Shown one piece after another: positions 14,571 through 53,100 of a DNA stretch of 64,000 bases (its first letter is position 1; every line of letters begins with the position of its first letter). The notes under the pieces are model-generated. The model saw nothing but the letters and a program-made list of their open reading frames with translations, did no database searches and was not told where the DNA came from. The DNA comes from Takakia lepidozioides. Its lineage: Eukaryota > Plantae > Bryophyta. The position numbers and the translations under genes are program-made. The stretch is from assembly GCA_030704615.1 (NCBI GenBank), contig CM060732.1, forward strand, positions 70,804,001 through 70,868,000, given 5' to 3'.

Positions 14571-15482
14571 ATGGCAGCCATGGCCACTCCTGCACAGCTG
14601 GGATCAGCGGTGAGTTCGCAGCTGGGAATGCCGTCTTACGAAGGACTGAGGACAACATCCTCTCGTCTGCGTTTGCAAGTATTTCCACCCTCTTCCTCAC
14701 TAAGGTGCCTCGGCGTAAGGGCTGCAACAGCTGTTGCCCCAAAGTTCACAACCCTGAAGCCTTTGGGGGACCGTCTCCTTGTGAAAATCCAGACATCTGA
14801 GGAGAAAAGTGCAGGGGGCATTCTTCTCCCCAGCACAGCTCAGACTAAGCCACAAGGTCTGGCTTTCTCTGTCCTAGTCTTTAGTATAGAAGTCTGTTTG
14901 TGAGGCAAGTGACAGCATCAGTAGTTGGAACCATGTGAATTTTATTTCTTTCAACTTTTCTCCTTACCAAAAAGTGCTGACATATCCACCTTGTTCTGTT
15001 TGGCAGGTGGGGAAGTGGTGGCTGTGGGCGAGGGGAAGACCATTGGCGAAAAAAAACTGGAGCTCAGCGTGCAAACTGGGGCTCAGATTGTTTACTCCAA
15101 GTACGCAGGCACGGAGGTAGAATTCAATGGCGAGGGGCACTTGTTACTGAAGGAAGATGATGTGGTAGGTCTTCTATCGACAGACGATATCAAGGATTTG
15201 CAACCATTGAATGACCGGGTGCTCATTCAGGTGACCGAGGCCGAGTCAAAGACAGCGGGTGGCATTTTATTGACGGACAGCTCAAAGGAGAAGCCTGTGA
15301 TCGGAACAGTAGTTTCCACAGGGCCTGGGACGTATGGAGAAGATGGGGAGAGGAAGGCTTTGGAGGTGACCCCAGGCAACACGGTGTTATACTCTAAATA
15401 TGCTGGTAATGAATTCAAGAACAAGGATGGTGTCCAGTATGTGGTTCTGAGGGTGTCTGATATTCTAGCCGTCCTCTCTTAA
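14571..15482 (+). CDS. CPN20: Chloroplast 20 kDa co-chaperonin (two tandem GroES domains); exons 14571-14856 and 15007-15482, 253 aa
   Basis: Transit peptide followed by [33 protein letters not shown]|[19 protein letters not shown], then a second [27 protein letters not shown] domain. A GT-AG intron at 14857-15006 joins the two exons in frame. Confidence 0.97.
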
Positions 15483-21849: not shown

Positions 21850-24148
21850 GGTGGTGAGGGAGCTATCTTTGAAGTCAACAAGCTGGCGGGAGTAGCCAAT
21901 TATCAAACTTGGAGGTTCAGATTTAAGAATCTGATCGTTCGTAACGATCTTTGGAACATCATCACCGACACACAACCGAAGGATGACTCGGAGCTCACAA
22001 ATCGCAGGAAGCAGAGGCTACTCGCCATGATTAATCTTTCAATGAAAGATGAGATCATACCATACATATCTGAGATTGATGATCCCCGTCAAGTTTGGAA
22101 CAAGCTAGAAAATTTGTTTGCCTCAGCAAGTCCAGCCAGAAGACTGTTGATCAGGAATCAGTTGTATAGTGCCAAGGTGACTGAGGATAGTAGTGTATCT
22201 GACTACCTAAGAAATGTGTAGGATTTGCACCAGCAGCTGCTAGCGATGGGAGATGTCATACCAAATGAAGATATCGTCATGGCGATACTCAATGCTCTAC
22301 CTGAGAGCTATGAGTCATTCATACAAAGCATCTCCAGTAGGGACGACTTTCCTACACTTGACCAGCTTGTGACTCGAATCCATCATGAAGAAACTAGGAG
22401 GGAGTTGAAGGGAACCAAGAAGGTTGAGGAGGAGGCTCTGATCATGAAGTTTAAGAAGCTATACAAAAAGAACGATGAGCAGAGGTCGACCAAGCCGAGG
22501 CCTGGCAAGTGCTACAATTGTGGAGAACCAAGTCACTGGGCCCGTGAGTGCACTAACCAAAAAAAAATGGGGAAGAAACCACATCAAACAAATAGTAGCA
22601 CCAAGGCAAAAGGGAAGCAAGTTGCAAACATCGTGCAAACTGAATCAAGTGATGAAGACAAGGAGTCTATTGAAGAGGGATTTGATCTATTTGAAATGGC
22701 AGTGGTCTCTCTTGAGATAGAGAAAACTCACGATGGAAGCCCATGGTACTTTGACTCGAGGGCATCCAAACATGTGACGGGAAAGAAAAGTAGTTTGGAC
22801 AGCTTTGAGGCCTGTGTGAATGACGGACGTGTGAAGTCTGCAGGAGGGCAGACTCACACTGTGAAAAGCAAAGACAAAGCCACATTTGTAACCCCTTCAG
22901 GAATAAAAAGGATTGACGAGGTTATCTACGTACCGGGTCTGACCAAAAATTTGTTGTCAGTAGGATCTTTAGCGGACAAGGGACACATCGTTGTGTTTGA
23001 TTCGCATAGATGTCTAGTATTGTCCAAAAATGGGCCCAAACAGATAGTAGCAAAAGGGATTCGTGATCCTAGAAATGGTCTCTATAAGATGGATATACAG
23101 TAGATAGAAATAAATGTTGTGTCATCGAGAGAGAAGGAAGTCAGGTTGTGGCATCAAAGGCTGGGGCATCTAGGCTCTTAGAACATGAAGCTATTGGAAA
23201 AGTAAAATCTTGTAGAAGGGTTGCCAACGCTTGATGACGTAGATGAAACCTTCGAACATTGCATGGCAGGGCGACAAGTCCGAGAGCCAGCTCCGAAAAT
23301 CAGCACAAGAAGGGCGAACAGGCCGCTCGAGTTGGTTCACACTGACCTATGTGGACCATTGCCAACAGCATCATTACGCGGTTCTAAGTATTTTGCTACC
23401 TTCACTGATGATTATAGCAGATTCAATTGGATATTTTTTCTCAAGAAGAAGTCAGAGACCTTAGAGAAATTTAAACAGTTTAAGCTACTTGCCAAAAATC
23501 AGACCAAGGAGAAGCTAGTAGCGTTGCGATCAGACCGTGGAGGTGAGTTTACATCATCGGCCTTTGTCAATTTTTGCAGAGAACATGGGATTAAGAAGGA
23601 GTTGACACAAACATATAGTCCTCATCAAAATGGAGTTTCTGAAAGGAAGAATCGAACGCTGTTGGAAAAGGCTCGAAGCATGTTTATACCCAGCAAACTC
23701 CCAGATTATCTTTGGACAGAGGCTGTGAATGCGGCAAACTATTTGGCCAATAGACTTCCTACTCGTGCAAACGAAGGTATGACTCCCATCCATAAGCTTA
23801 CAGGCGAGAAACCTCGGCTAGACCATTTGAGAGTCTGGGGTTGTGAGGCGTTCATGCATGTTGCCAAAAATAAAAGAAATAAACTTCAATCCAAGTCCCA
23901 GCGATGCTTTCTAGTAGGGTATAATGAGCAGAGCAAAGATACAGGTTGTTCTATCCAAAGAAGAAAATCATTGAAATTAGCAAGGATATTAGATTCAATG
24001 AGTCCCACTTTGGATTTAGGGCAAATGACGCTGATGCACTACAAGAACCAACACAAATCAGTCAGTTTGTCTTCAGGGAAGTGAAAGATGACTTGAAACT
24101 AAGCTTCCTGCATCACCTGCTACAATACAAGAGCGTGCTTTGTCAAAT
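21850..24148 (+). pseudogene. copia gag-protease-integrase, with in-frame stops and frameshifts
   Basis: ORF pieces 22027-22221, 22225-23103 and 23221-24084 carry the zinc knuckle, GAG-pre-integrase (LWHQRLGH) and rve motifs. Confidence 0.93.
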
Positions 24149-24882: not shown

Positions 24883-26955
24883 CTTCATTAGCAGTGCCTG
24901 ATTTTATCAATTGTGTCGCTGCTGCTGCGGCTTCCAGTTGACCATCTACTCATGCAGGTTTCTTCTAGCTATCATTCCACAATGAATCATAGGTAATATG
25001 GAGCTTGAAAATCCGGCCCTCTTGGATGAATCTGCGCCCACACTCTATCCCTGCTCCTTCAGCTATCCATGCCCACGAGGGTATTGTTCAGAATCATATC
25101 TGGTACAATTCCAGCTTTGGTGATGCAACCATGTACCTCTTTGCATGTGCTTTCCAGGGCTGCCAGGCTTGCACATGCACTGCAAACGCACACAAACATG
25201 ATGTGGTCGAGCTTCACCCCTTCTCCCATCATTTGCTTTCAGGTCTCCAAAGCCCCATCCTGCGCTCATGCTCTGCAGGCCCTCACCACAAGGGCATATT
25301 TCATAACGACATCAATTCAATTCCAGCTTGGATGATGTCACCACGAACCCCGTCTTCACTCATTGCCTACTCTAGTTAAGTGCAATTATGGGCTAGGCTG
25401 ATACCACATCTCATTCAGCCATATTATCAAACTGCATGCCATTTGTATCCTTGTAGTTGTACCCAAACTTGGCATACATGTCCACTACGGCAACATTCAA
25501 AATCACATCAGATACAATACTAGCTTTGACAATATTACCGTGGACCTCTGCACCATTTTTCAGGGCTACCAGGCTTGCATTTGACATACGTATCCACCAA
25601 GGCAGTGGTTAGAGACATCTAGTGGTACAATTCCAACTTTGACAATGTCACCATGGACCGTTGCGTCCTTTCCAAGGCTACCAAGCTCGCATTTGACTTA
25701 CATGTACACCAAAGGAATGTTCAGAATGACATCAGGTACAATTCCAGCTTTGATGATGTCACCATGAACCTCTTGGCCCTTTCCCAGGGCTTCTAGGCTC
25801 GCATATACATATTACAAACACAAATGAACATGACCTGGTCTGGCTTCATCCTTTCCCACATCATTTGCTCTTAGGTTTCCAAAGCATCCCACACCCATGT
25901 TGCACATACCTTGCAATCATGGCACTCCACAACACCACATCTCATTTAGTCATGTTGCCAAACTCTCCATTCGCATCAGGCTTGCTACACCCACATTTGG
26001 CATACATGTCCGTCAGGGCAGTGTTCAAAATGACAACTAGTACAATTTCAGCTTTGACGATAGCAAATGGCCAAGAGTTATCCCAATATCCCGCTACCAA
26101 TGAGTTCAAGGCATATCCTTGTCACATTGGCAGTATCATGTCAAAGTCACTCCCAACTACATTCACTCAACAGCTAACTTGCAGAATTCAACATGAAAAT
26201 TGAGGGCCGATTCTGATAAGAGAGGAAAACATGGTGAAATGTGTTGAAGAAGGTGCCTTCATTAGCAATGCCTGATTTTATCAATTGTGCAGCTGCTGCT
26301 GCGGCTTCCAGTTGACCATCTATCCATGCAAGTTTCTTGTATCTATCCTTCCACAGGGAATCATAGGTAACGTGGAGCTTGAAATCCGGCCATCTTGGAT
26401 GAATCTGGACACACACTCTATCCCTGCAAAAAACAAGCATACATCTTTGCCTTCCTGCTAGCAGCTGACAATGACAGCCTAGAATTGTTCCAGCAAACAC
26501 CCCCAACCCTACTTATCAACGAGCAACGAGCTAACTTACAACATTCAATATGCATCTCAGGGCCAAGTCTGGTGAGAGGGCAAAACAAGCTAAAATAGGT
26601 CGAAGAAGAAGATGCCCAGGTTTCTTGTAGCTCTGATCCACTAGGAATCATAGTAATCTTGTGCTTGATATCCTGCCCTATTGGATGAATCTGGACCCAC
26701 ACTCTATCCTTGCTCCTTAAGCTATCCCAGCCTCTGCACACATCACGCATACATCCTCGCCTTGCTTCGAACGGCTGACATTGACGGCCTAGACTTGTTC
26801 TAGCAAACACCCAACCCTACTCATAACACGCTAGTTCTTATGTTGAATGGCATCTGCTTCTCTCTGGATTGTAACAGGCATTCACCTTTTTTCCTCGATC
26901 GTCCCACCATTGACTAGGGTCGGAAAATATTCCTTCCACAACTTCTCCTCATCCC
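24883..26955 (-). pseudogene. Captured, shuffled fragments of an OSB-PDF-motif + PLS-PPR gene
   Basis: Exon A (~26953-26886) reads EEKLWKEYF(S)DPSQWWDDRGKK|GT, with a 1-nt deletion. Exon B occurs in three copies, starting at 26690, 26404 and 25031; the best reads AG|IHPRWPDFKLHVTYDSLWKDRYKKLAWIDGQLEAAAAAA. Decayed PPR motifs lie at ~25065-26060 (TALTDMYAKCGCSK, GVKLDHIMFVCVCSACASLAALE..KEVHGCITKAGIVPDMILNNTLV). Confidence 0.85.
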
Positions 26956-27474
26956 TATATGTTCTTGGATACTTTCATGTTGCCACATTGGCAGTCACAT
27001 GCCAAAAAAAATTATACCGCCATAGATCAACCCAACAAGCTAACTTGTAGAATTCAACATGGAAATTTGGGTCGACTATGATAAGAGGGCAAAACAGGCT
27101 GAAATGTGTTGAAGAATGAGCCGTTACCACTTTGTCCTTGACCTCGTGTCATGGCAACTAGCTTTTCTTTCAACCATGGAGGATTCAACCGACCAGCAAC
27201 CCAACTCCTTTACTGAAACCAAGACGAGCAAACCTGCTTCCGACTTCAGTGAGAGAAAACAAGGGCAAACAAAGCAAAATTCACACATTTGCACAAGGCA
27301 TACGCTCCTGCACACCCACTCCATACGCAAGGCCTTGTCCTCTCATTTGGCTCATACGAGAGGCCTCACATCATGCTGAGTTGGAAATGATTTCGCACAG
27401 GACGAATTTCTTCATGCCCCGATTCTAGGGTTTGAGTCCATGTCTGCCCCCTATCCCACCAGCTCCGCTCGTCG

Positions 27475-28879: not shown

Positions 28880-30640
28880 GATGGAAACACCGATGCATCT
28901 GAAGGGTTTTCTGACGGTGAAATTGAGACGATGCAAGGAGTGACATCATCTTTGATGCATAATGGCTCTTCGTTGGATAGTGGCAACATCTCGAGAGAAA
29001 TACAAGCACACTCGAGGGAGAATATTGAGGAGAATGTGCCACGGCAATCAACAAGACAGAAACGTCTACCAAAGAGGTACATTGACTTTATTATGTCCAT
29101 AGAAGAGTAGGAACCCGTAACCTTTGAAGAAGCGATTGTGAGTAGAGGCTGGAGAGAAGCTATAAACTTTGAAATGGAGTCGATCGCTAAAAACAAAACG
29201 TGGGAGTTGGTAGATCTTCCTTCGGGGAAACAACCCATAACAACAAAATGGGTGTACAAGATAAAGATGGGATCAACTGGAAAGCCTGAAAAATTAAAGG
29301 CAGGGCTTGTGGCTAGGGGATTCCAACAGGTTGAGGGTTTGGATTATGATGAGACGTTTGCCCCAGTGATAAAATGGGCAACAATCATAACCGTTATTGC
29401 CATGGCTGCTCATGAGGGATGGGAGATCAATCAATTAGACGTGAAGACCGCTTTTCTAAATGGGGAGTTGAGAGAGGAAGTGTATATGATGCAACCTGAT
29501 GGATTTATCAAGCCAGGAGAAGAAGGAAAGGTCTGCAGATTAAGAAGAGCATTGTACGGATTGTAGCACGCTCCAAGAGCCTGGTATGAGAGGATAGACA
29601 CCTACTTGAGAGCACATGGTCTCAACAGAAATGAATCAGATTGTAATCTATATTTCTTCAATAAGGACGACAAAACAGTCATTCTAGCACTCTATGTGGA
29701 TGACCTATTGTTGACTGGTAGCGATACTACCAAGATTAGCTGGCTCCAAACCCAACTCGAGAGTGTCTTTGAAATGTCTAGCCTTGGCCTACTGAGCAGA
29801 TATCTTGGAGTAGAGTTTACCTATGTTGACAAAAGGATATTCATGGGGCAAAAGCTCTACATCATGGACATGTTGAGAGAATTTAACATGGAAGACTGCG
29901 AAACGAGCAAAATGCCTATGGCAGAGGGACTCAGGTTAGCAGCAGATATGGGGACAGAAGTAGTAGATGCAACAATGTATCGGAGAATGGTGGGGAAGTT
30001 TCTCTATTTGACCAATACTAGACCCGACATCAGTTATGCAGTTGGAATAGCAAGCAGATTCATGGAGAGGCCTGAGGAAATGCATCTCGAAGTAGTGAAG
30101 CACCTATTGAGATACCTCAAAGGAACAACTGATTTGGGAATCATGTACTGGAGAGGTGACTCTAATGTCATCAACGGATATTCTGACTCCGATTGGGCTG
30201 CGGACTATGACAGCAGAAGATCAACAAGTGGCTTCATTTTTAGGTTGGGAGCAGGGCCCATAGGCTGGCTGAGTAAACGTCAACCAAATGTAGCCTTATC
30301 ATCGACAAAGGCTGAATATAGGTCATTATCAGATAGCACCAAGGAGTCTGTTTGGCTGAAGCGAATGCTTCAAGAATTGAGTCTTGCAGACGAAAGGGTG
30401 CATATTCAGATGTACTGTGATAATCAGAGTTGCATTAAGATAGCGCATAACCCTGTTTTTCAAACACATAGAAGTCCAATATCATTTTGTTCGAGAATAG
30501 ATCTTGTTAGGAAACCTAGAGGTCAATTATGTCTCAACCACCGAATAAATAACAGACATTCTGACAAAAGCCTTAGGAAGACTCAAGTTTGAGAAGTGCA
30601 GATTCGAAGTAGGCCTGAGGAGAGAGGTCCAAACTAGAGT
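28880..30640 (+). pseudogene. copia RT-RNase H, with stops
   Basis: ORF pieces 29138-29566 and 29606-30592 contain WELVDLP, YDETFAPV, LYVDD, TRPDISYAV and YCDNQSCI. Confidence 0.93.
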
Positions 30641-40579: not shown

Positions 40580-43027
40580 AAAACCACCAAAATCACCTAA
40601 GGAAAGAGCAAGGACAGAGCCTTTTGTGGCGGAGCCACTTGTTTTTACCGGACTCTTAATGTATTGTAATCCACACCCTCACCGAAGATAGAGTGAAACA
40701 TTTAATTACAAATGAATTAATTTTTGCAATGGGTTCACCTTGAATTGCTAAGCTATGGAGAGCATTTTGACCCCCCATAAGCAGATACAAAGGACCTTAA
40801 TAATTAAAAAGACTGTTTGGCTTGAAAGTTTTACATTACTTAGTTAGGATACCATACCACATTTCTATGTGAGAGGTAGGCGCAGTAAAAATCATACCCT
40901 CACTCAAAGAGCTTTGTCAAAGCTCAAGTTTTCCCTCATCACTAAGCCACCGCCATCGCCTTAAAGAGCTCGCCCAGGCGTCGCTCACAGGAGCCATAAA
41001 CACTCATCATACTTTGCAAAATCCGTAAACAAGAACTCCCCCACTAAAACACTAAAATCTCTTTTGGCGCGTAGTGAATTTCTCCACAATTTGCTGGGCG
41101 GATGTATGTGGTAGGCAAGGTGAATATGACAAGGCTCATATGTTTGGACCTAATATGGTAGGTGTGGAGCGTCAATTAACTTGCCATAGGTTACTTTTCT
41201 AAAGGCTGCTCACAGGCTACCCAACCTTCCATCTGGAAGGGATTCCACACATTGGATTTTTTGCTATTTGCGACCTTTTTTATTTTGGGAAATACTTATT
41301 TTTAGGAATAAATAAACAGGGGGCAGGCCAACGGAAACTATATTTGGAATTATTTAGGGGAAAATTAAAACCCCATTTCCAGAAAGAAATTGGTTTGTTG
41401 TTTACAAAATGGAGCAGCACTAATATTTTCAATCAAGTTGGGAAGGCCCTCCAATTTTTTTTTATTGAAACCATCCATGTAAAATAAACCCCTCGCATGG
41501 GGTTTACCTCTAATTCTGCTCCGCCCCATTATTTCGTAGGGCTTATTCAATGGCCCACCCTTCTGAACATGGGGTCACCTGGCATGGTGCATACTGCATA
41601 CATTGCAGAAGGGCGGGCCCCTGTTGCATCGTCATCGTCAGGTACCCGCACAAGACATTCTTGAAACCATTCCACTTGCGCTTCTTTGCGCTCATCTCTC
41701 ACCTGCCAAGCAGCGTTTGCATCAGAGAAGACAACTGATACAATAGATCTCTGCAGATGCTGCATGTTGCAGCTTTGGATTCCGTTGAGAATCCGTTCAG
41801 AACTGTGTTGTTGAAGTGAAACTAGGAGGCCACTGGGTGGCCGCTTCGGGCATTAAGAGTGACCTGCTCATGACATGTCAGTGGAGTTCTTGGTCCAAGA
41901 GCTTCCATGCTGCAGTCTGCAAATCTAGATTCAAAGTTGCATCACTCAAATCGAGGGAGAGTTTGGGGACAAGAAATTCAGCTGTATCACCAACTCTCTG
42001 CAAATGACAGGGAAAACCCACATCCACTCTGGATTAAAAAAACTCTGCAGTTGATTCTTGCTGGAATAGGGCTAGATTCAGATTGGTGACTCCCATGGAG
42101 TATTACTATGAAAAAGAGGCTACAGCTCTCAAACATGAGGCATGGGCTCTTCAGGGAAATAAGAACTCATACAGGAGAGTATCTGTAGCATCCCTTTCAA
42201 CCATTTGCATCATGTCCTGATTCGTACCGTGGTTTGAGGGGCTATCAGATGCATTACACAAAGATTTCATAGGAGCGCCAACTTTTCATAGTGAGGTCTT
42301 TGCGAGAAAGCTTCCCATAGAGGCCATGCTTCATGGGCTTCAAGTTGGAGGTTTGCTACAGAAATCCATGAGTTGGAATACATGCCCAACAAAGGTTAAC
42401 ACCCACCCATGCCTGACTATCCTGCCCTATCGATGGAAGTCCCCAAATAATCTGCCTCTGCAATTCTGCACCATTTATATCTGACAATGGTACTGACTCT
42501 TTCACCATTTAAAGTAGAGTTCATTCATCCAGATGATGCACAAAATGCGGGTAAATGCTTAAGATTTACACCTGGTGGTGGGGACCTTATACTGGCGCAA
42601 TAATGGTTGCCAATTCTTTCTGGTCCCCCAGGGACAGATCACACCTGACAATATACAGGAATTACAGATGATACAAATCAGAATCATTTTACAAAATTCC
42701 CCAACCGAACCTGAGCTGTTCCCATCCGGTGAGTCATCAAATGCACATTTGATGGTTGCACAAAATCGCTTTCACAAGACCTGATCCATCCCACAACCGA
42801 TCCTTTACTATCAGCAACTACATCAAAGGTGATACACAGCACAAGCCATGTAACATCAAAAAATCGACCATGGTCAACCAAAGACTCCCATACATTTAGG
42901 TCAAGATTTGGTCCTATTTGTCAACCTCCATTTCATCTTGCTCCCCTATCTCTCCTGGGCATTCGGTGTCATTACTTGACACAAAAAGAGTGGTATGAGT
43001 CAAGAGTGAACAAAATACAAAGACTCT

Positions 43028-44977
43028 TCAAATCTGTTCAGAACCAGTAGTCACCTTTCCTTTCTTGTTCAGTGAGCCCATAATTGCCTGTTGAGCTTCG
43101 TCAATCTCTCGGTCCTGTGTCTGTCTCAGAGCAGCAGACTTCTTTCTTTTCTTCTTCTTCTTAACCACATTTTTGAAGAAAGATTGTTGCTCCATTTCAC
43201 TTTGCTGGAGCTTCCTGTTTTCAGTTGGATTTTTGGCAAGTTCATCAGACAAGTATTCAATTGTCCTCCTCTTCTCCTTGAGCAACTCTTGGAGCTTAGA
43301 AATCTCCCTTGACTTCAATTCCACCTCGCTTTCTTTGACCTGTTTGAAGATGTGGATCTCAGCTCCCAGTTGCATAAGTGCAGTCTTCAACCTTTGGTTT
43401 TCCTCTTTCAGCTCCTCAATCCCTAAGGCAGGAGATTGCTCCTGAGCAGCTGCTCCCTTCTCATCGACAAAGGTAAAAAGGCGCACCCCCATGAGTAGCT
43501 GCCTCTGAAGAGCTTCCCTGTCCTTGAACCATCTGTCCTTAGCTGCTTGCAGATCCTTACCTGCCAGTGCCTCGTCCTCTAGTTCCTGAATTTGAAAGTC
43601 CCTTTTTTCAACCTCCAAGGCCCTCCTTTCAAAGACACCTGCTGGGGTGTCTTCAGTACTGGATCGCAGCACCTGTTCTTGCTGCTGTGATTGAGTTAGC
43701 CCATCCCATTGTTCTCCCTCTTCTTCAACTGTCTTGTCCATTACCAATCTCCCACTTGCTGAAGTAGTGGTCTCTGGTGACACTCCTGGATCTCTGATGG
43801 GCTCAACTTTGTACACATTTCCTTCTCTAGTTTGTAACTGAGGTTGGCCTCTTTCAGACCCTGAAGTTCCACCAAAGGTTATAACAGCATGCCCTTGTTT
43901 CTCCCTTGCTGCGAATAGTCCCAATGCCAGGTCTTGCTCCAACCTTGCTGGTTGTGGCGGGGAGAATTGGTCTTCAGTCCGACCGACCACTCCACCAGGA
44001 AAAGTAATCTTGTTCTTAGGTGCATGCTGGATCTGTGATCTATCCTCATTCACTTGCTTACGTCCAGCTTCTTTCCTGGCTTGTTGTTGTTCTTGTTGTT
44101 CTTGATAAGAGGCATGTTCTCCCTCCATTTCTACCACTGATTGAGTACCTCGGTCTTGTGATGCCTCCATTCCCCTCTTAAGTACATCATACTCTGTCCA
44201 CAGTCTCACAAAAGCATCCCCCCTCGTTATGAGTCTGCTGGTAAGCTTTGATGTTTGCACTAAAGCCCCTTTCAGATGCTCTGAGAGAGATTGGATCAAA
44301 TTTTCCTGCTTGGCAGGCCCGGAGCTCCTGTAATGTTCTGTCAATACCTTGATAGTCTTGTGGAACTTAATAAAGTCCGTCAAAATTTCGACATGCACAA
44401 GGTCTTTTCCTTGCTTCCATCTCCCTAGATCTGCCAGTATCATGTCAGAGACTTCCTGACTCCAGTTGACAAACTCACCCTTCCTCAGCTCAACATAGGC
44501 TGCAGATGCCAGCTTCCAAGATACCATGCTTCTTGCCAAAGGTCCAAATGTTCTAATATGCATCCTCTTTACGTGCTTGTGCAGACCTCTATCAGTGCAC
44601 GTTCTAAGGATGAGCCCATTGGGGCTGTGACCAGGAAAGAACCACTTTAATTCTTCCTTCGCCTCTGTAACTGTCTCTGCAGGGGTCTTTCCTGAAGATG
44701 GCAGGCCCAGTGCTTTTGCCACAGTTTGAGCGTCCACCTTGTACACCACACCTTCACAAACCATGGTCTTTGCCTTCAGATCCACACTGGTAAGATTGTC
44801 CAAGTCCACCTGTAAGACACGTAGGTCTTGAGCTACAATGCCAAGCCAGGGCTCTTCCATAGCAGAGGCCAAGTTCACACTCCCTTGCTCCAAACGTGGG
44901 TTACACCCTGCTGCTAACTCTGAATTCTGCCCGGAGGTGTTTTCTTTCATTTGCGTGATTGCTTGTGAGCTGGCCAT
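43028..44977 (-). CDS. Intronless ~649-aa protein: N-terminal plant-transposon-like domain, Q/E-rich middle, C-terminal coiled coil and poly-K NLS
   Basis: Uninterrupted 2-kb ORF with first ATG at 44977. The segment VDAQTVAKALGLPSSG...GEFVNWSQEVSDMI resembles accessory 'putative plant transposon protein' ORFs (judged by eye). Heptad-rich tail ending in KKKKKRKK. Confidence 0.6.
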   Translation of the reverse strand: MASSQAITQMKENTSGQNSELAAGCNPRLEQGSVNLASAMEEPWLGIVAQDLRVLQVDLDNLTSVDLKAKTMVCEGVVYKVDAQTVAKALGLPSSGKTPAETVTEAKEELKWFFPGHSPNGLILRTCTDRGLHKHVKRMHIRTFGPLARSMVSWKLASAAYVELRKGEFVNWSQEVSDMILADLGRWKQGKDLVHVEILTDFIKFHKTIKVLTEHYRSSGPAKQENLIQSLSEHLKGALVQTSKLTSRLITRGDAFVRLWTEYDVLKRGMEASQDRGTQSVVEMEGEHASYQEQQEQQQARKEAGRKQVNEDRSQIQHAPKNKITFPGGVVGRTEDQFSPPQPARLEQDLALGLFAAREKQGHAVITFGGTSGSERGQPQLQTREGNVYKVEPIRDPGVSPETTTSASGRLVMDKTVEEEGEQWDGLTQSQQQEQVLRSSTEDTPAGVFERRALEVEKRDFQIQELEDEALAGKDLQAAKDRWFKDREALQRQLLMGVRLFTFVDEKGAAAQEQSPALGIEELKEENQRLKTALMQLGAEIHIFKQVKESEVELKSREISKLQELLKEKRRTIEYLSDELAKNPTENRKLQQSEMEQQSFFKNVVKKKKKRKKSAALRQTQDREIDEAQQAIMGSLNKKGKVTTGSEQI

Positions 44978-46892
44978 CTTTCGGAATGTTGGGAGTGGTC
45001 TCGGGGACCGAGCCCTTGAAGCCCGCTGATCAATTTCACATTGAAAATCGAACACAAACTGCACTGCAAATGTGACAACCTCACCAATGTCCCCAGCTTA
45101 GTAGGATAAAAGGAAGAACGCCGATGACAGAGTGCCACCACAGCAAAGAGAGCAGTTGATCAACCAAACAACCCAGCTGACTACTCATTCGGAACCGTGA
45201 GACGGGCACAACACTGAATGAACGAAATTGCTCCCCCTCCACACGACGCAAAATAGAGTGTGCCCCTTTGAATTGTTCCGGAGACAGTACTATACATCTG
45301 TTTACGAGGGCCAGCATCCCAACAGCGACCACAAGCTACCCCTAAGCAAATCTCTCGCCACAATGTAACGAATCAATGTAAAGGTAAGCATTCAGGTTGA
45401 GAACGTGATCTCCTTGCAACGCCATCCAGCAGGAAAGAGCGGGACCTAATTACAAAGAAGATTTCATTTCCTTGATCTCAATTCTATCAACTCAGCAGCA
45501 ATTTGAGGTAACCAGAAGGCAGGGCTCAAGGGTTTAGGGCTGGGAGCTTGCCTCGGTTAGCAATTAATCTCGTCTATGTTGGTATGGAGAATCTCACTGA
45601 GAAGAAGAGAAGAAGTGGACGAAAGGGATACAATCGTCGATGACGATAGTGACGGAGATGCCTGCGATGCACGACAACATGCTAACGAGGAACAGTCGAT
45701 CCTGAAAGGAAGCCGAGGTCAGGAGCGAGGAGTGACCAAGGACAAAGCAGACGGCCTAGAAGTGGTCAAGGCTTGCTGTGGCCTTCAAGTATCATACAAT
45801 TCTAATAAGGTCTGGTATTCATATGCTTGCTTTCCCGTTGTTTCTAGCTGATTTTGTGCTACTTTAAATTGAGTTAATGGTCTTTAGAGTCAAGAGATGG
45901 TTAGGTGGGGAAGATTCCGACATGGAGGAACAAAGGTATAGAGGTATGTAGCTCCGCGCTCGTTGGTTTTGAACTGTGAGCTCCATAATTTCATTGACAA
46001 AGCCCGGCAGAGTTTGCACCATTGGGCACTTCATGGTCATACCAGGGTTGGAGAGGAAGCTGAGTGTAACCGCGGATCTTGATCTCCTTCCATGAGTTCC
46101 TTCTCTTAAAATGAGAAAGAGAATGTACTCATAAGACGTTGTCTGCCGTAGGGGTGGCCCCTGTGCCCAGTTTTGGGCGGAACAAGAGGGAGCATCTACA
46201 CCTTGGTCAATATCAAAGAAGTTAGATTTCTGTCCACTAGCCCAGAGGAGAGAGGTAATTGTTAACATCTATTTGTTGTCGCCATACTGTGGGATGCCCT
46301 GTTTACACCTACCAATTTTTCTCCCAGGTCGACAGTTATGGAAATCACATTGCCCATGGAAAATCTGTAACTTCCAGTGCAAGCAATTGAGCTCTCTTCA
46401 ATGCACAGGACTAATTATCATGTCTGTATCAGATTTGACAGACATTGTTGGCCACAAAATGCCCCTAACACTAAGGGGCAAGAGAGATGTATTCACTGAC
46501 TGGCAGGATAGTCCTCCGGGACATCAACCCTCTGGAGCAGTCGTCTACCGGGCTATGGAAACTCAGGCCAGAAACGCCATAGTTCTAGTGCACAGCAGGG
46601 GATTGAGTGCTTCAAGTGCCAGGATGGACATCATCCTAGTCTAGAATGAACACTTGTAGCATCCAGAGGCTTTCTGGGACAATAGTGTGGAACAACCTAA
46701 GGTGTATCAAAGAAACAGGCCTGAAAATACGGGCTTATGAAGCCAAGTGACTAGGTATTTCTGATCTTTGTACCCGAATCCCTCTGACAAAGGGGCCTCT
46801 TTGGGAGTATTTCCCTGGAAGCACTAGCAGAATAGACACTGAAGGGATCATAAGCTGGCAGGTTCTAATGTTCTTTCAGTTTTTTCATGCAG

Positions 46893-49800
46893 GTCAAGCA
46901 ATGAGCATAGAACTTGTCCGGCAGGATTTCTTCTCAGATTGTTCACAATGGTGGGACATGAGGTTTGAAAAGGTGGCTATCTTCACTTAGGACACAAAAG
47001 AGGTTGTCAGGGAGGGCTTTTGACTTATGAGTGGTGTGATGCTGTTTGGGACTGGATTGTATCCCCGGTTGCTTAAATGAATCACGATTTGCGCTTCATT
47101 GTGAAAGAGCAGAAATTGCAGTTTTCACTACTGCTATGTATCAGTAGATTTGTGCGAAATTAGGGTGCCCATAGTATTTGATGGAGCTTTGGTGATTGGA
47201 ACTTGGAGCTGGGGTTGAAGCTATAGCTGCTCAGCTGTGCCACTTGTGCTTGTCACAGAAAAGTCCAAGATCACAACACTTCAGCCATAAGCACACAGAC
47301 GAGGTCCTTTGGATCAAGAGTTGGTTGAAGCTTCCATGGCTGAAAGCACAGCTACCTACCATGATAGATGGTAGAGAACAATATAGTGGTGGTTCTAATC
47401 TCAGTGTACACCCTGGAGCTCCAGGCCGAGAATACAATGGGTATTGTTTTGGTGATAATGCAATGGTTGCAACTCAAAAAGGTTGGTGCAGTTCATTCCC
47501 AAAGTAGGTGACTACAGTTGTTTTGTAAACCTGTTGACTGTAGAAGAAGCCTGTCTCGTGAGGAGATTTCTCTTTAAGGCAGTCAGGAGGTTTGAGGTCT
47601 GTAAGTTTGAGTATGAGGCATGTTACTCAAGTTTTGAGTCAGGCAGGATTGCAGGGTTGAATCAGGCCCAGTTGTTTATTGGACATCAGACTGACGGCAG
47701 GGATAACACCTCCACCATGACCACTAGTTTTAAAAGAGGAGCAAGAGAGGAAGTCAACAAGACATCTTCTCGCACTTGTGGATATGTGAAGACTCTTTGT
47801 AAGGCAGCACGACTAAAAGAAGCGCTACTTATTTTGAATCAACAAGACATTCGGGCAGACTCCGGTACTTATGTATGTCTGTTGCAGGAGTGCATCAACA
47901 TGAAAGGTCTAGCAGAGGGAAAGCAAGTGCATGCCCATATGATCCAAAGTGGATTCAAACCAAATATCTCCCTACTCAACACCCTTGTCAACATGTATGC
48001 CAAGTGCGGGAGTGTGGTGGATGCACGCCAGGTGTTTGACAAAATGGCCAAACGAGATCAATTTACATGGACTACAATGATAGCAGGGTATGCCAAACAC
48101 GGGTGTGGTAGGGATGCTTTCAATATGTACATGCAAATGCAACAGGAAGGAGTGATGCCCAACAAGGTCACATTCGTTTGTATTCTGAATGCATGCGCCA
48201 GTATAGGAGACCTGGAAAAAGGTAAAGAGGTCCATGCTGACATTTTGAAAGCTGGAATTGCGTCATATACAAATTTGGAGACTGCCCTTGCTGACATGTA
48301 TGCTAAATGTGGGAGCATGAAGGATGCGCGTAGAGTGTTCGACAACATGATTCAGCGAGATGTGGTCTCCTGGAATGCCATGATCGCAGGATATGCGCAG
48401 CATGGGTATGGTAGCGAGGCTCTTGAGATCTATGAGCAAATGCAAAGGCAACAGGTGACACCCAATAGGGTCACATTCACATGCCTGCTTAGCGCTTGCG
48501 CCAGCCTAGGAGTGCTGGAGACAGGCAAGCAGGTCCATGCTGAGATCAGCAAAAGCAGAATTGCAGTAAATATTATATTGGAGAATGCCCTCGTTGACAT
48601 GTATGCCAAGTGTGGGAGCATGAAAGATGCCCATCAAGTGTTCCACAATATGGCTCAACGAGATGTGGTCTCGTGGAATGCCATGATTGCCGCATATGCT
48701 GAGCGTGGGTACGGCAGGGAAGCTTTAAAAATGTATGAGCGAATGCAACTGGACAGACTGACACCGGACAGAGTAACGTTCATTTGCATTCTCCATGCGT
48801 GTGCTAGCCTAGGAGACTTAGAAAAGGGCAAGGAGATACATGCTGACATCATCAAAGCTCGCATTGAATCATACATAAATTTGGAGAATACTCTAGTTGA
48901 TATGTATGCCAAATGCGGTAGCATGGGGGATGCACTTCAAGTGTTTGACAATATGGCTGAACGAGATGTGGTCTCATGGAGTACGATCATCGCAGGATAT
49001 GCTCAGCATGGTTGTAATAAGGAGGCTCTTGAGATCTTTGAGACTATGCAACAGGAAGGGGTGGTCCCCAACACCATCACATTTGTTTCCATCCTGAAAG
49101 TGTGTGCGAGCCAAGGGGCCCTGGAAAAAGGCAAGGATATCCATGCTGGCATCATCAAAATTGGATTTCTGCCAGATGTGATTCTTGAGACTGCCCTTGC
49201 TGACATGTATGCCAAATGTGGGAGTGTAAGTGATGCCCTTCAACTGTTTCAGGATATGGCTCAACGAAATGTGGTCTCATGGAATGCCATGATCAGAGGA
49301 TGTGCTCAGCATGGGTGTGGTCTGGAGGCCCTGCAACTATTTGAACAGATGCAACAGGACGGCTTGAAACCAAATGGTATCACGTTCATCGCTCTTCTCT
49401 CTACATGTAGCCACATGGGCCTACTGGATGAAGGCCATCACTACTTCAATTCCATGATTCGAGATCATGACCTCACTCCTACATTAGAGCATTTTGGCTG
49501 CATGGTGGACCTTCTTGGCCGTGCAGGGCGATTGGATGAGGCAGAGGATTTCATTAACAGAATGCCAATCAACCCAGACGCTTCTGTGTGGAGGGCCTTG
49601 CTTGGTGCCTGCAGAATTCATGGTGATATGAAGCTAGCAGAACGAGCAGCAAAAAGCATTCTTAAGAGTGATCCGCAGGACGCCTCAGCTTATGTGCTTC
49701 TATCAAACATCTATGCTATGCCTGGCAGGTGGGATGATGAAGCAAAGGTGAGAAGAATGATGGATGGCAGGGGTGTCAGAAAGGAGGCCGGGCACAGCTG

Positions 49801-49894
49801 CATTGAGGTTGATAACGAGGTTTATACATTTGTTATGGAAGACAAATTGCATCCGCAAATTGAGGAAATTGGTGCTGGACTAATGGGCGGTTAA
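46893..49894 (+). CDS. PLS-class PPR protein (17 PPR motifs + E1/E2 + E+) with an N-terminal OSB-type PDF motif; exons 46893-46972, 47259-47481 and (47544/47643/47655)-49894; possible first exon 45576-45717
   Basis: The long ORF shows L-S-(P-L-S)x4-P2-L2-S2-E1-E2 and a PG-box variant KEAGHSCIEV. The upstream exons splice to ELVRQDFFSDCSQWWDMRFEK|KSPRSQHFSHKHTDEVLWIKSWLKLPWLKAQL. The phase-1 donor at 47482 is compatible with three phase-1 AG acceptors in the PPR frame. The PPR call is near-certain; the upstream exon model is inferred. Confidence 0.85.
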
Positions 49895-50121
49895 AGGAGG
49901 TCAGGTATGTGTCTGGCACACGCTTTGTACGGCCCAATGTGGAGGAGCAAAAGGAGTTTTCTTTTTGCCACCATGGTGAGAAGCTGGCAATTGCATTTGG
50001 TCTGTAGCACCCCCTGGGATGCCTATCCATGTCATCGAGAACCTTTGGGTGTGTGGTGACTGCCACACCACCAAGTTCATCTCAAAAGGTTGTAGGGCGA
50101 GCAGTTGTTGCACTGGATGCC
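49885..50121 (+). pseudogene. Frameshifted fossil DYW cytidine-deaminase domain downstream of the PPR stop
   Basis: Shifted frames read RLKEVRYVSGTRFV..EEQKEFSFCHHGEKLAIAFGL*, then PGMPIHVIENLWVCGDCHTTKFISK, then VVGRAVVALDA. HxE and CxxC are recognisable; the terminal HHF..CSC.DYW is absent. Confidence 0.9.
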
Positions 50122-53100
50122 GCAGAAGAAAGCGCAGTGCTGAAAGTCGTGTTTCCTGAAAGAGACTATTTTCCCCAACTTCCGTATGTTGCCTGTTTCC
50201 CCAGTAATCACCAGAAGAACAAATCCCATCTTGAAAGTGGTGGAAATGGGCGAGCTGGGCATGGTGATGTTCACAGCTCCATTGTGGTCACACGTCATAT
50301 CTGAGTTCAGCTGTCAAGTCATGGAAACCCAATGTTGCAGAATTGTTGCTTACCAAGGAACAGTATGCATGAAGAGAGTCCCGATGTAAGGGGCTTTGAT
50401 ACCCCAGAAAGTGGACTATGAGGATCGACCCAACAGATTCAAGAAAGACCACGCACTGAAAAGGTGATCTTCTCTGGACTGCCTGGGGAACATGCAGCAT
50501 CTTAACACCTTTAGCTTCTAGTTGACACGCATTGGTGAGGGCCTCAAATAGTCAGTGTTATTTCCCAAGAGTGCCACATGTGAGAGTCAAGCACACAGTT
50601 TTGCAGTCGTAATCACATGAGAGGAATTCTGAATGGCACAATAATGGATAGCCAGGTTGTGGTGGCAGTTAAGGTGGCTAGGCCAGGGCAACTACCAGGA
50701 TCAGAGTCTAAATCTCACCAACTGCAAGCTACTTGCCCACAATCAGCTCCCCACTGGGGCCATGCTGACTGCACAGTCTAGGGTGGGGACTGGGGCTTTT
50801 GGAGGCAGGGCAGGGTGAACGCATCGCAGGCAGAGATTTGTGGAGAGGGCAGACACTTGAGGCTCCTCACATTTCGGTGTCAGCCTGAGGTGGAAGATAA
50901 TGAAATTCAATGCTGATGTGCAGATCCGCTGAGACAACAAAATAGCTGAAACAAGGGTTGCATAGAGTGCCTGCAGTTCTGTCTTACCACCCCATTCTCC
51001 AAGGGAGCAATTGAATTGTTAATCTATGGTGTGGCATTCCTAGCTAGAAGCTAAGAAGAATCCCATCAAGGATTGTTAGAACAAGAGCTTAAACATGAGA
51101 ATGAGCAGGACTTAAAATCCCAATGGACAACAAAACTTGACCTCAAACAGATTCCATGCATCGTTAATCTTAGAAGCCAGATGACAAGCCAGACCTGTGA
51201 AAGGGGAGGCATTCTACCATGCACCTTTATCCTGAACAATCTTCAGGCGTTTCTCCACTTCAATAACTGCAAACTGGTGTATCTTTCATGGAAGCACACT
51301 TAACTCTTCTGTCCACCATCACTCTGGGGACACAACTGATCCTCCTTTTGACAGAATTTGAATTGCATATAATGGTGTGGTAGATGAAAGGGTCTCCCTT
51401 GCATTCAACTGACTTTTGACAAAGAAAAGTAAGAATTCATTGCAGGGTTCTAGAAAAGAAACTGGACCTTGTCGGTCAGAAATTCAATGTTGTTTGGAAA
51501 GGGAAGCAGAAGAGCTTCAATGCAATCGAGCTGCAACATCTGTGACTGATGAAGGACAGTCACCAATTGCTTGTACCCATAACCATATGACCGAAGTAAT
51601 CCAAAAGAAAAGGAAGCTAGCAGTTAAGAATCAGTGGCTTGCATCTGCTACAATTACAACCATTCTCTTCCCGAACAAAATTTTCTGCGCAAGGCAAAAC
51701 CAATCCACCTTTTCTGTCAGAAGAAGCACTCTGATGAGCATCTCCTACTGGACTACACCGAGCTAACGATGATTAAATAAAGTATCACCCAAAACTGTGG
51801 CTCGATAAGCAACATTTCATAAACAGAGTCTTATATGTCCACTGTGCCCCCACGTCCTCACTCAAGATGTGCAGAAAAACATGAGGCAATGATATCTCAA
51901 CTTTTTAAATCATGTGGAGAATCAATTGCAAGCACATTGACAGTTGCCAAGTACTAGCCAAAGACAACCTTTCTCTAAGACCCGAAACCTCCTTGGCAAT
52001 GCCAGACAAATACAGGACTATGTTCAGTGGGTCTTGAGCCTTCCCTGAAAATAAGAAACCTTTCTCTTGCAAATCAAGGCTGCTTCTTGAAAATCACTGC
52101 CACAGAAACGAGATTTGAAGCAAACATTGCATTGATCATAATCAGACAACAACAGAAGTCAGACTGCTCTATTCTATCATTGACAAGTAGAACAGTTTAA
52201 GTACTTCAAACAAAGAGTTCTGCATCAGTGTCATTTGATAAGCCTTCACCTCCCTCCTTGTTCCTTCAAATGTATGATCTTCATGGGGAGAGCTATACAA
52301 ATTTACAGGAAAATTCCTTAAGAGTTTCGGCTGTAGTAAGTTTGGTGAAACCACACTCACACAAATCCTGAATGTTGGACTGACAGAACAAGAACCCTGG
52401 AAAAGATGTAACTGACATCTCGTCCAGCATCCTCTTCACCATTGCCGAAAGCACTATTACAGTTGAGAGGGATATAGTTCACCAGGTTGGAAGATTTGCT
52501 TGGATACAGTTTATTGGCAAGAACCGTCCCGCAGGTGCTAGATGTGTGCCTGAAAGTGCCTATATGACTGTGACCTCCCTGACAAAAAAGGTTGACAACG
52601 TCTTATGAGTACATTCTATCAGAAGTTCTGTTCTGCAGTTATACACGTTGGTGGTTCAGCTAGTTTTGCAGTTGACAGATCAAAAGAATGTTGAGTCTAA
52701 ATCTGACACCTCCTTGACCTCGTAATTATATATCCTTACCACTTGGAACTTAATGTGTAAAGTTTTGTCATGGTCCATCGTTTGTTGGACAAACTTTGCC
52801 TTTGAAGGGGCAGTTCCGCATACTTATTTGTTAGTCTCCATAAGTAGTGCTAAATGTGGCAGTGCTGTATGCGCCTTCTGAAGGCTTCTGATGGTCTGTC
52901 TCTTCATTTTGGTTAGTGAGGCTCCATAAACTCAGACCAAGTGATTTCGAAGTCATAAAGGCTTCCACTTATTGTACTTACAGCAGATTAGTTCTGAAGG
53001 GCTATAGAGCACCAATGCAGAAACAACTACACGCCTGCATTGTGGCGAACCATTTCTGTGAGAGCAGAAGATAGAACGACAGAGAAAGCATTTGTTGACG

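Follow-up and report, generated by a model that had tools for sequence, protein, structure and literature searches.

Four kinds of plant proteins come closest to the gene described here, which is found in a 64,000-nt stretch of the genome of the bryophyte Takakia lepidozioides (the window, whose numbering is used for all positions at this locus) and in which two small exons coding for a PDF motif stand ahead of a long PPR open reading frame (ORF). The first are the OSB proteins, in which the PDF, a motif of ca. 60 residues reported to bind single-stranded DNA (ssDNA) (PMC6963530; PMC13393729) and, in OSB1, to be sufficient for this binding (PMC6963530), is located C-terminally behind an SSB-like OB fold. 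The second are the PLS-E-DYW editing factors, such as Physcomitrium PPR56, whose described members have a presequence alone before the PPR tract. The combination of a PPR tract and a second nucleic-acid-related module in a single polypeptide is known from PPR-SMR proteins, PRORP (PPR-NYN), PPR4 (RRM-PPR) and OTP51 (PPR-LAGLIDADG), and the accessory domains given in a review of Physcomitrium PPR proteins are RRM, LAGLIDADG, SMR, NYN, CBS and SAP, with no PDF among them (PMC9459714). There is also a precedent for an organellar "ssDNA-binding" module acting on RNA in the Whirly protein WHY1, which is reported to bind RNA as well and to have a role in RNA maturation (PMC2532728), although this is a separate protein of unrelated fold that is not fused to PPRs.

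The Takakia locus (Table 1) shares the PDF motif with the OSB proteins, and PLS triplets, E1/E2 motifs and a recognisable DYW remnant with the editing factors. We found that the same combination recurs in other plants, and this PDF-PPR family differs from all the systems above. Unlike in OSB proteins, its PDF is N-terminal to the PPR tract and there is no OB fold, and in contrast to the other PPR fusions it pairs the PPR tract with the OSB PDF motif. The window copy departs further from both relatives, as it is without the P-D of the PDF signature and its DYW domain is broken. We consider that the locus is probably a decaying, still transcribed copy of a gene of the PDF + PLS-PPR + E + DYW family, from which the fusion protein can no longer be produced. 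The initial annotation had proposed a PDF-PPR-E-(DYW) chimera at this place; the architecture does exist in the family, but the locus does not encode it, given two consecutive TAA codons upstream, an apparently out-of-frame junction, lost PDF residues and a broken DYW.

The PDF motif of the Takakia locus

What the two small exons code for was examined by profile searches, in which each exon of the spliced model was treated separately. A profile built from the PDF motifs carried by PPR homologues was searched against 3252 pieces of the window translated in six frames, and it matched the second-half exon with an E-value of 4.5e-9 (profile positions 23-59) and the first-half exon with 1.6e-7 (positions 3-24), i.e., the two exons hold complementary halves of the motif that meet at the intron. 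All other matches in the window came from another locus, a fragmentary one located on the minus strand. When the profile was derived from OB-fold OSB proteins only, the same exons were detected in the same set of pieces with 9.4e-9 (positions 24-59) and 1.2e-4 (positions 6-24), respectively. The identification of the pattern W..FF.DP.QWWD as the OSB PDF motif, made from the sequence alone, is borne out by both profiles. Conversely, each motif of the named OSB1, OSB2 and SSB proteins received 85-98 bits from the PPR-derived profile. A search with the PDF region of one Diphasiastrum PDF-PPR protein retrieved OSB2 of Cryptomeria (5.5e-30), OSB1 of Linum (1.6e-14) and a single-strand DNA-binding protein of Marchantia, all three with the SSB OB fold PF00436. 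Judged by its sequence, the peptide of the two small exons is a genuine OSB-type PDF motif. Pfam gave no family match on either PDF exon and nothing relevant on the preceding exon (exon A), and no sequence coding for an OB fold was found upstream of the PDF exons by Pfam or tblastn.

The two exons had been predicted from their GT-AG ends at the same coordinates and with the same translations that we obtained, and their borders are well defined (tgcag/GTCAAG...GAAAAG/gtggct for the first half and tcacag/AAAAGT...AAAAAG/gttggt for the second, in both cases AG/.../GT). We also considered a duplicated and decayed copy of the second-half exon at 47483-47860, and rejected it: local DNA and protein alignments of this segment to the exon were no better than those of shuffled sequences, and the PDF profile had no match there.

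The AlphaFold model of an intact PDF of the family is confident (pLDDT 92) and consists of two helices with two short strands between them. Among solved structures it had no PDB sequence match and no Foldseek match at E <= 0.001 (the best was 6.2), and the best Z in VIA-align was 2.6. The predicted fold therefore gives no functional hint.

The PPR part is a 803-codon ORF (47483-49894, plus strand) that opens at a TTG, not a genuine start codon, the first ATG in frame (47717) leaving 725 codons. Pfam detected PPR_2 (2e-97), PPR (3.4e-94) and E_motif (8.5e-17), together with a partial E+ match under the cut-off. Four 303-nt repeats, each a P-L-S triplet, extend over 47982-49190, and a PLS-class PPR array with E1/E2 motifs is confirmed for this locus. 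The closest PPR homologues were from Diphasiastrum, with 50-54% identity.

A PDF-PPR family in seedless land plants

We searched for the same combination among the relatives of the PPR ORF. In 23 of its 120 best homologues the string WWD.R...PDF.HK was present near the N-terminus, and the profile made from these motifs raised the number of PDF carriers to 28 of the 120. The PDF region of one Diphasiastrum protein retrieved at least 75 clusters of annotated proteins, all from Diphasiastrum complanatum and between 658 and 1386 aa long, every one of them with PPR families and 24 with DYW as well. An exhaustive profile search of 1.84 billion representatives yielded 1409 PDF-bearing clusters; the best 150 of them, a set skewed to proteins with several PDFs, included 67 OB-fold OSB-like proteins and eight PPR proteins. 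Apart from Diphasiastrum, PDF-PPR proteins could be named from Sphagnum species (one of them with PDF, PPR and DYW), the fern Adiantum capillus-veneris and the liverwort Calypogeia fissa. In Calypogeia (P0085) a single uninterrupted exon (L001, 4105-7668) codes for both PDF and PPR tract, and the fusion is therefore no artefact of merged gene models. PDF + PLS-PPR + E (+DYW) is a real and recurrent architecture in seedless land plants.

The gene structure is shared as well. The Diphasiastrum gene for protein P0083 (L002) has three PDFs, each of them split by a phase-0 intron at the position found in the window (...RF.K / ...PDFKHK), and its first first-half exon, of ca. 80 nt, opens on a split Gly codon and then reads Q-A (G/QA), just as in Takakia. 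The window locus has the layout of the family, in which the PDF precedes the PPR tract in the same orientation and the exon structure matches, and illustrates a conserved family gene structure in which the position of the PDF intron is common to Diphasiastrum. Intact members are C-to-U editing factors in which one to three PDF modules, each typically coded by two small exons, follow a presumed organellar presequence and precede the PPR tract; the window copy has kept this exon structure and a long open PPR/E frame.

In the P0083 gene (L002:3505-5736; CM055102.1) the PDFs form exon pairs, with first halves of ca. 72-81 nt and second halves of ca. 147-180 nt. The outer phases of the first two pairs match, a layout that would permit in-frame tandem duplication of PDF units.

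A chance adjacency, in which an OSB gene fragment or a PDF fragment carried by a transposon happens to lie beside an unrelated PPR gene, could be imagined in a window where transposon ORFs are abundant and where a second fragmentary PDF + PPR remnant is found (ca. 25062-27203, minus strand). We regard it as very improbable, since order, strand, intron position and phases agree with the Diphasiastrum PDF-PPR genes, the linker behind the PDF in the second-half exon can be aligned to PDF-PPR proteins too, the search for a sequence coding for an OB fold upstream was negative, and splicing connects the PDF exons with the PPR exon in one transcript graph (see below). The shared gene structure largely refutes it. 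Flanking inverted repeats that would mark transposon capture of the locus were not found within 42000-53000.

The initial annotation knew of no characterised protein with this architecture, and neither did we find a description in the literature searched. A 2026 paper on the OSB family makes no mention of PPR, and we found no publication in which the PDF or OSB motif is brought together with PPR or DYW proteins, beyond reviews that treat them separately, in a search with most subscription journals outside its coverage. Provisionally, then, the fusion family is apparently undescribed.

The searches also retrieved OSB-like proteins with OB fold and PDF (P0169, P0178 and P0183) in the chlorarachniophytes Amorphochlora, Lotharella and Gymnochlora, presumably derived from the green-algal endosymbiont. 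A protein model of the angiosperm Kingdonia uniflora (P0205, 1160 aa) has 13 PDF stretches and an OB fold, far above the up to five PDF motifs reported for OSB proteins (PMC13393729), and may be an annotation merge.

Transcripts and splice junctions

The evidence for transcription comes from contigs of two runs (X1 and X2) that hold parts of the stretch; the RNA status of both is a guess, and none of the runs on record as RNA holds it. The most informative contig is record 1 of X1 (1867 nt), in which letters 1153-1560 correspond to window positions 45400-45807 and letters 1641-1866 to 47257-47482, with one mismatch in the latter piece. The 80 letters between both pieces are the 80-nt exon 46893-46972, once the ambiguity of the AG is allowed for, while 45810-46892 and 46973-47258 are omitted. 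This contig is a GT-AG spliced molecule that joins exon A to the first PDF exon and this to the second, and such splicing argues that X1 is indeed RNA. The predicted junction 46972/47259 is shown by this contig, which is not the case for the step from 47481 to the PPR exon.

For this last step we used the overlap between contigs. If these contigs were built with k=31, in the manner of Logan contigs, neighbours are expected to overlap by k-1 letters. Record 1 of X1 continues for two letters beyond 47481. The alignment of record 2 (238 nt) covers 47645-47856 without mismatch and leaves 26 letters loose, which with the shared AG makes 28 before 47647. As 28 plus 2 equals the 30 letters of such a k-1 overlap, we infer the junction 47481/47647. 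Use of the in-frame junction at 47643 would have extended the alignment of record 2 to 47641. At 47481/47647 the split codon GGA is followed by L-Q-G-TGA and the PDF ORF stops four codons on, while with the junction at 47643 the frame runs on into the PPR ORF. The claim that a phase-1 donor can be joined in frame to the PPR exon is correct insofar as the AG at 47642/47643 fits, but the contigs point to the other acceptor and none supports 47642/47643, so that PDF and PPR would not share one reading frame in the mRNA.

Given the out-of-frame junction, the observed mRNA would code for a PDF-only ORF of at most ca. 100 codons, and the PPR ORF, with its first ATG at 47717, is in another frame and is preceded by two upstream ORFs, which start at ATG 45576 and ATG 46901. 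The former, in exon A, has 78 codons and meets the donor at 45809 in phase 0, where phase 1 would be required. Plain joining of exons at a locus of this kind would over-call functional fusions.

Upstream of 45400, record 1 of X1 has another 1152 nt. The minus strand carries a 678-codon ORF (43028-45064) without Pfam match, rich in glutamine, glutamate and lysine, to which the contig would be antisense if it is collinear with the genome in this part.

Decay of the locus

The PDF of the window has lost part of its most conserved residues. In a reference alignment of 28 PDF motifs, both PPR-borne and OSB-borne, 12 columns were invariant (W7, D19, R21, K24, P30, D31, F32, K35, L41, W42, P49 and W51), and four of these are changed at this locus (W7R, P30Q, D31H and P49L), the P-D-F signature being Q-H-F. 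Two nearly invariant columns are changed too (P14 to C and K33 to S). In addition, exon A read in the PDF frame ends in ...TAA TAA G and closes this frame just upstream of the motif. As a consequence the PDF ORF can start only at its first in-frame ATG (46901), which lies at the motif, and without a presequence. Upstream of the PDF we found no homology to the N-termini of the homologues, although presequences are poorly conserved, and no transit peptide was identified at the locus.

The DYW domain is damaged as well. Alignment with Diphasiastrum DYW ends revealed a frame change near 49885-49891, a TAG stop inside the remnant (50005-50007, in the context ...AFGL*), a further frame change at ca. 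50010 and another caused by an extra base in the A-run 50086-50089. The final ca. 17 residues (..HFHHFQDGICSSGDYW) are inverted, on the minus strand from 50254 to 50201, and have no stop behind them. Pfam recognised DYW_deaminase on 50019-50156 only under its cut-off, and there is no intact in-frame DYW cytidine-deaminase domain at this locus. The rearranged region is spanned by mismatch-free contigs from both runs (X1 record 7, 49982-50400, and X2 records 14 and 15), and the rearrangement is therefore not an assembly error. Other contigs either have no extra base at 50089 or change strand somewhere from 50067 to 50245, and we take them as paralogues.

The rearrangement amounts to an inversion of ca. 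130 nt (50122-50254) that moves the C-terminus of the DYW domain to the opposite strand, and it is found in the contigs of two independent runs.

The DYW lesions already contradict a working PDF-PPR-E-DYW chimera coupling ssDNA binding to editing, which we consider extremely improbable at this locus. Exon order and strand speak for it, as do a possible in-frame acceptor and the reality of the family architecture. Against this, the DYW is broken by a stop, frame changes and an inversion, in an arrangement confirmed by independent contigs, the signature residues of the PDF are gone, the PDF frame is closed upstream and the observed junction is out of frame. Since there is no coding continuity upstream, PDF residues are lost, the splice is out of frame and the DYW is wrecked, the fusion would be lost and the locus would no longer serve the function of its family, a case of copies decaying while still transcribed.

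Several observations weigh against this reading. The junction to the PPR exon comes from contig coordinates and was not read from letters, the in-frame acceptor 47642/47643 lies only 4 nt upstream and could serve a minor isoform, and the contigs give no isoform ratios. The assignment of X1 as RNA is itself a guess, though one that GT-AG spliced contigs favour. The PPR/E frame is open over 803 codons, with no lesions in ca. 2.2 kb versus about five in ca. 365 bp of DYW, an asymmetry which suggests that the PPR/E part was kept under selection after the loss of the DYW. Alternatively, the DYW lesions may stem from one recent, localised and messy rearrangement.

The same asymmetry would favour a working DYW-less PPR-E specificity factor, translated either from the internal ATG 47717 or through a minor isoform that has the PDF in frame, with the DYW supplied in trans as for the E/E+ proteins of flowering plants. 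Contigs identical to the locus cover the PPR, E and DYW-remnant regions, and a DYW is missing from the annotation of about two thirds of the PDF-PPR clusters in Diphasiastrum. We nevertheless find such a factor rather unlikely: the locus has no identified transit peptide, the observed transcript contains two ORFs ahead of the PPR ORF, the PDF is degenerate and the observed junction is out of frame. Moreover, trans-acting DYW partners are not known from seedless plants. A decaying family copy remains the reading that we prefer.

Table 1. Features of the PDF-PPR locus and of a second remnant in the window.
Feature	Position	Strand	Description	Basis
Exon A, 3' part	45400..45809	+	donor AAG/gt at 45809/45810; non-coding in PDF frame	X1 contig record 1
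First-half PDF exon	46893..46972	+	80 nt; phase 1 in, phase 0 out	profile matches and X1 record 1
Second-half PDF exon and linker	47259..47481	+	223 nt; phase 0 in, phase 1 out	profiles and X1 record 1
Inferred intron, PDF exon to PPR exon	47482..47646	+	acceptor 47646/47647, out of frame; alternative in-frame AG 47642/47643	contigs (acceptor)
PLS-class PPR array and E1/E2 motifs	47647..49894	+	open frame, TAA 49892-49894	Pfam, homologues, 303-nt repeats
DYW deaminase remnant	49891..50121	+	frame change, TAG, two further frame changes	tblastn with Diphasiastrum DYW ends
Inverted last part of DYW domain (..HFHHFQDGICSSGDYW)	50201..50254	-	inverted segment ca. 50122-50254; no stop after W	
Second PDF + PPR remnant	25062-27203	-	PDF matches 27203-27147, 26933-26871 and 26407-26303; PPR homology down to ca. 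25062	PDF profile (PDF matches)

Possible role of the PDF in editing factors

An N-terminal single-strand-binding module that recurs on dozens of factors is a concrete and testable candidate to explain how PPR editing factors of early-diverging land plants attain high affinity without the MORF and ORRM helpers of seed plants, and the family would bring into RNA editing a motif that is otherwise known from DNA-maintenance proteins alone. Tentatively, and with less than even confidence, we propose that PDF-PPR(-E-DYW) proteins form an undescribed class of organellar editing factors of bryophytes, lycophytes and ferns, in which the PDF would act as a single-strand clamp or as a nucleoid tether, and of which the PPR-E part of the Takakia locus would perhaps be a DYW-less factor. 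The 5' part of the RNA element is bound by the N-terminal PPRs, so that a PDF placed before them would lie over nucleic acid still further 5'. Its simplest role would be that of a non-specific single-strand clamp raising affinity, in replacement of the MORF/ORRM helpers of seed plants. Alternatively, the PDF might tether editing to nucleoid ssDNA or to transcription bubbles; nucleoid tethering, like an action on ssDNA or R-loops, is speculation.

Other features of the window

The second PDF + PPR remnant is heavily fragmented and has only short ORFs left. It is flanked by copia-type ORFs: gag/Pol_BBD (22225-23103) and integrase (23221-24084) on one side, RVT_2 (29606-30592) on the other. Elsewhere in the window, an intron-less ORF of 185 codons on the plus strand (14925-15482) codes for two Cpn10 domains (PF00166, 4.3e-45) in the manner of a Cpn20-like chaperonin, and it may be either a retrocopy or a genuine single-exon gene.

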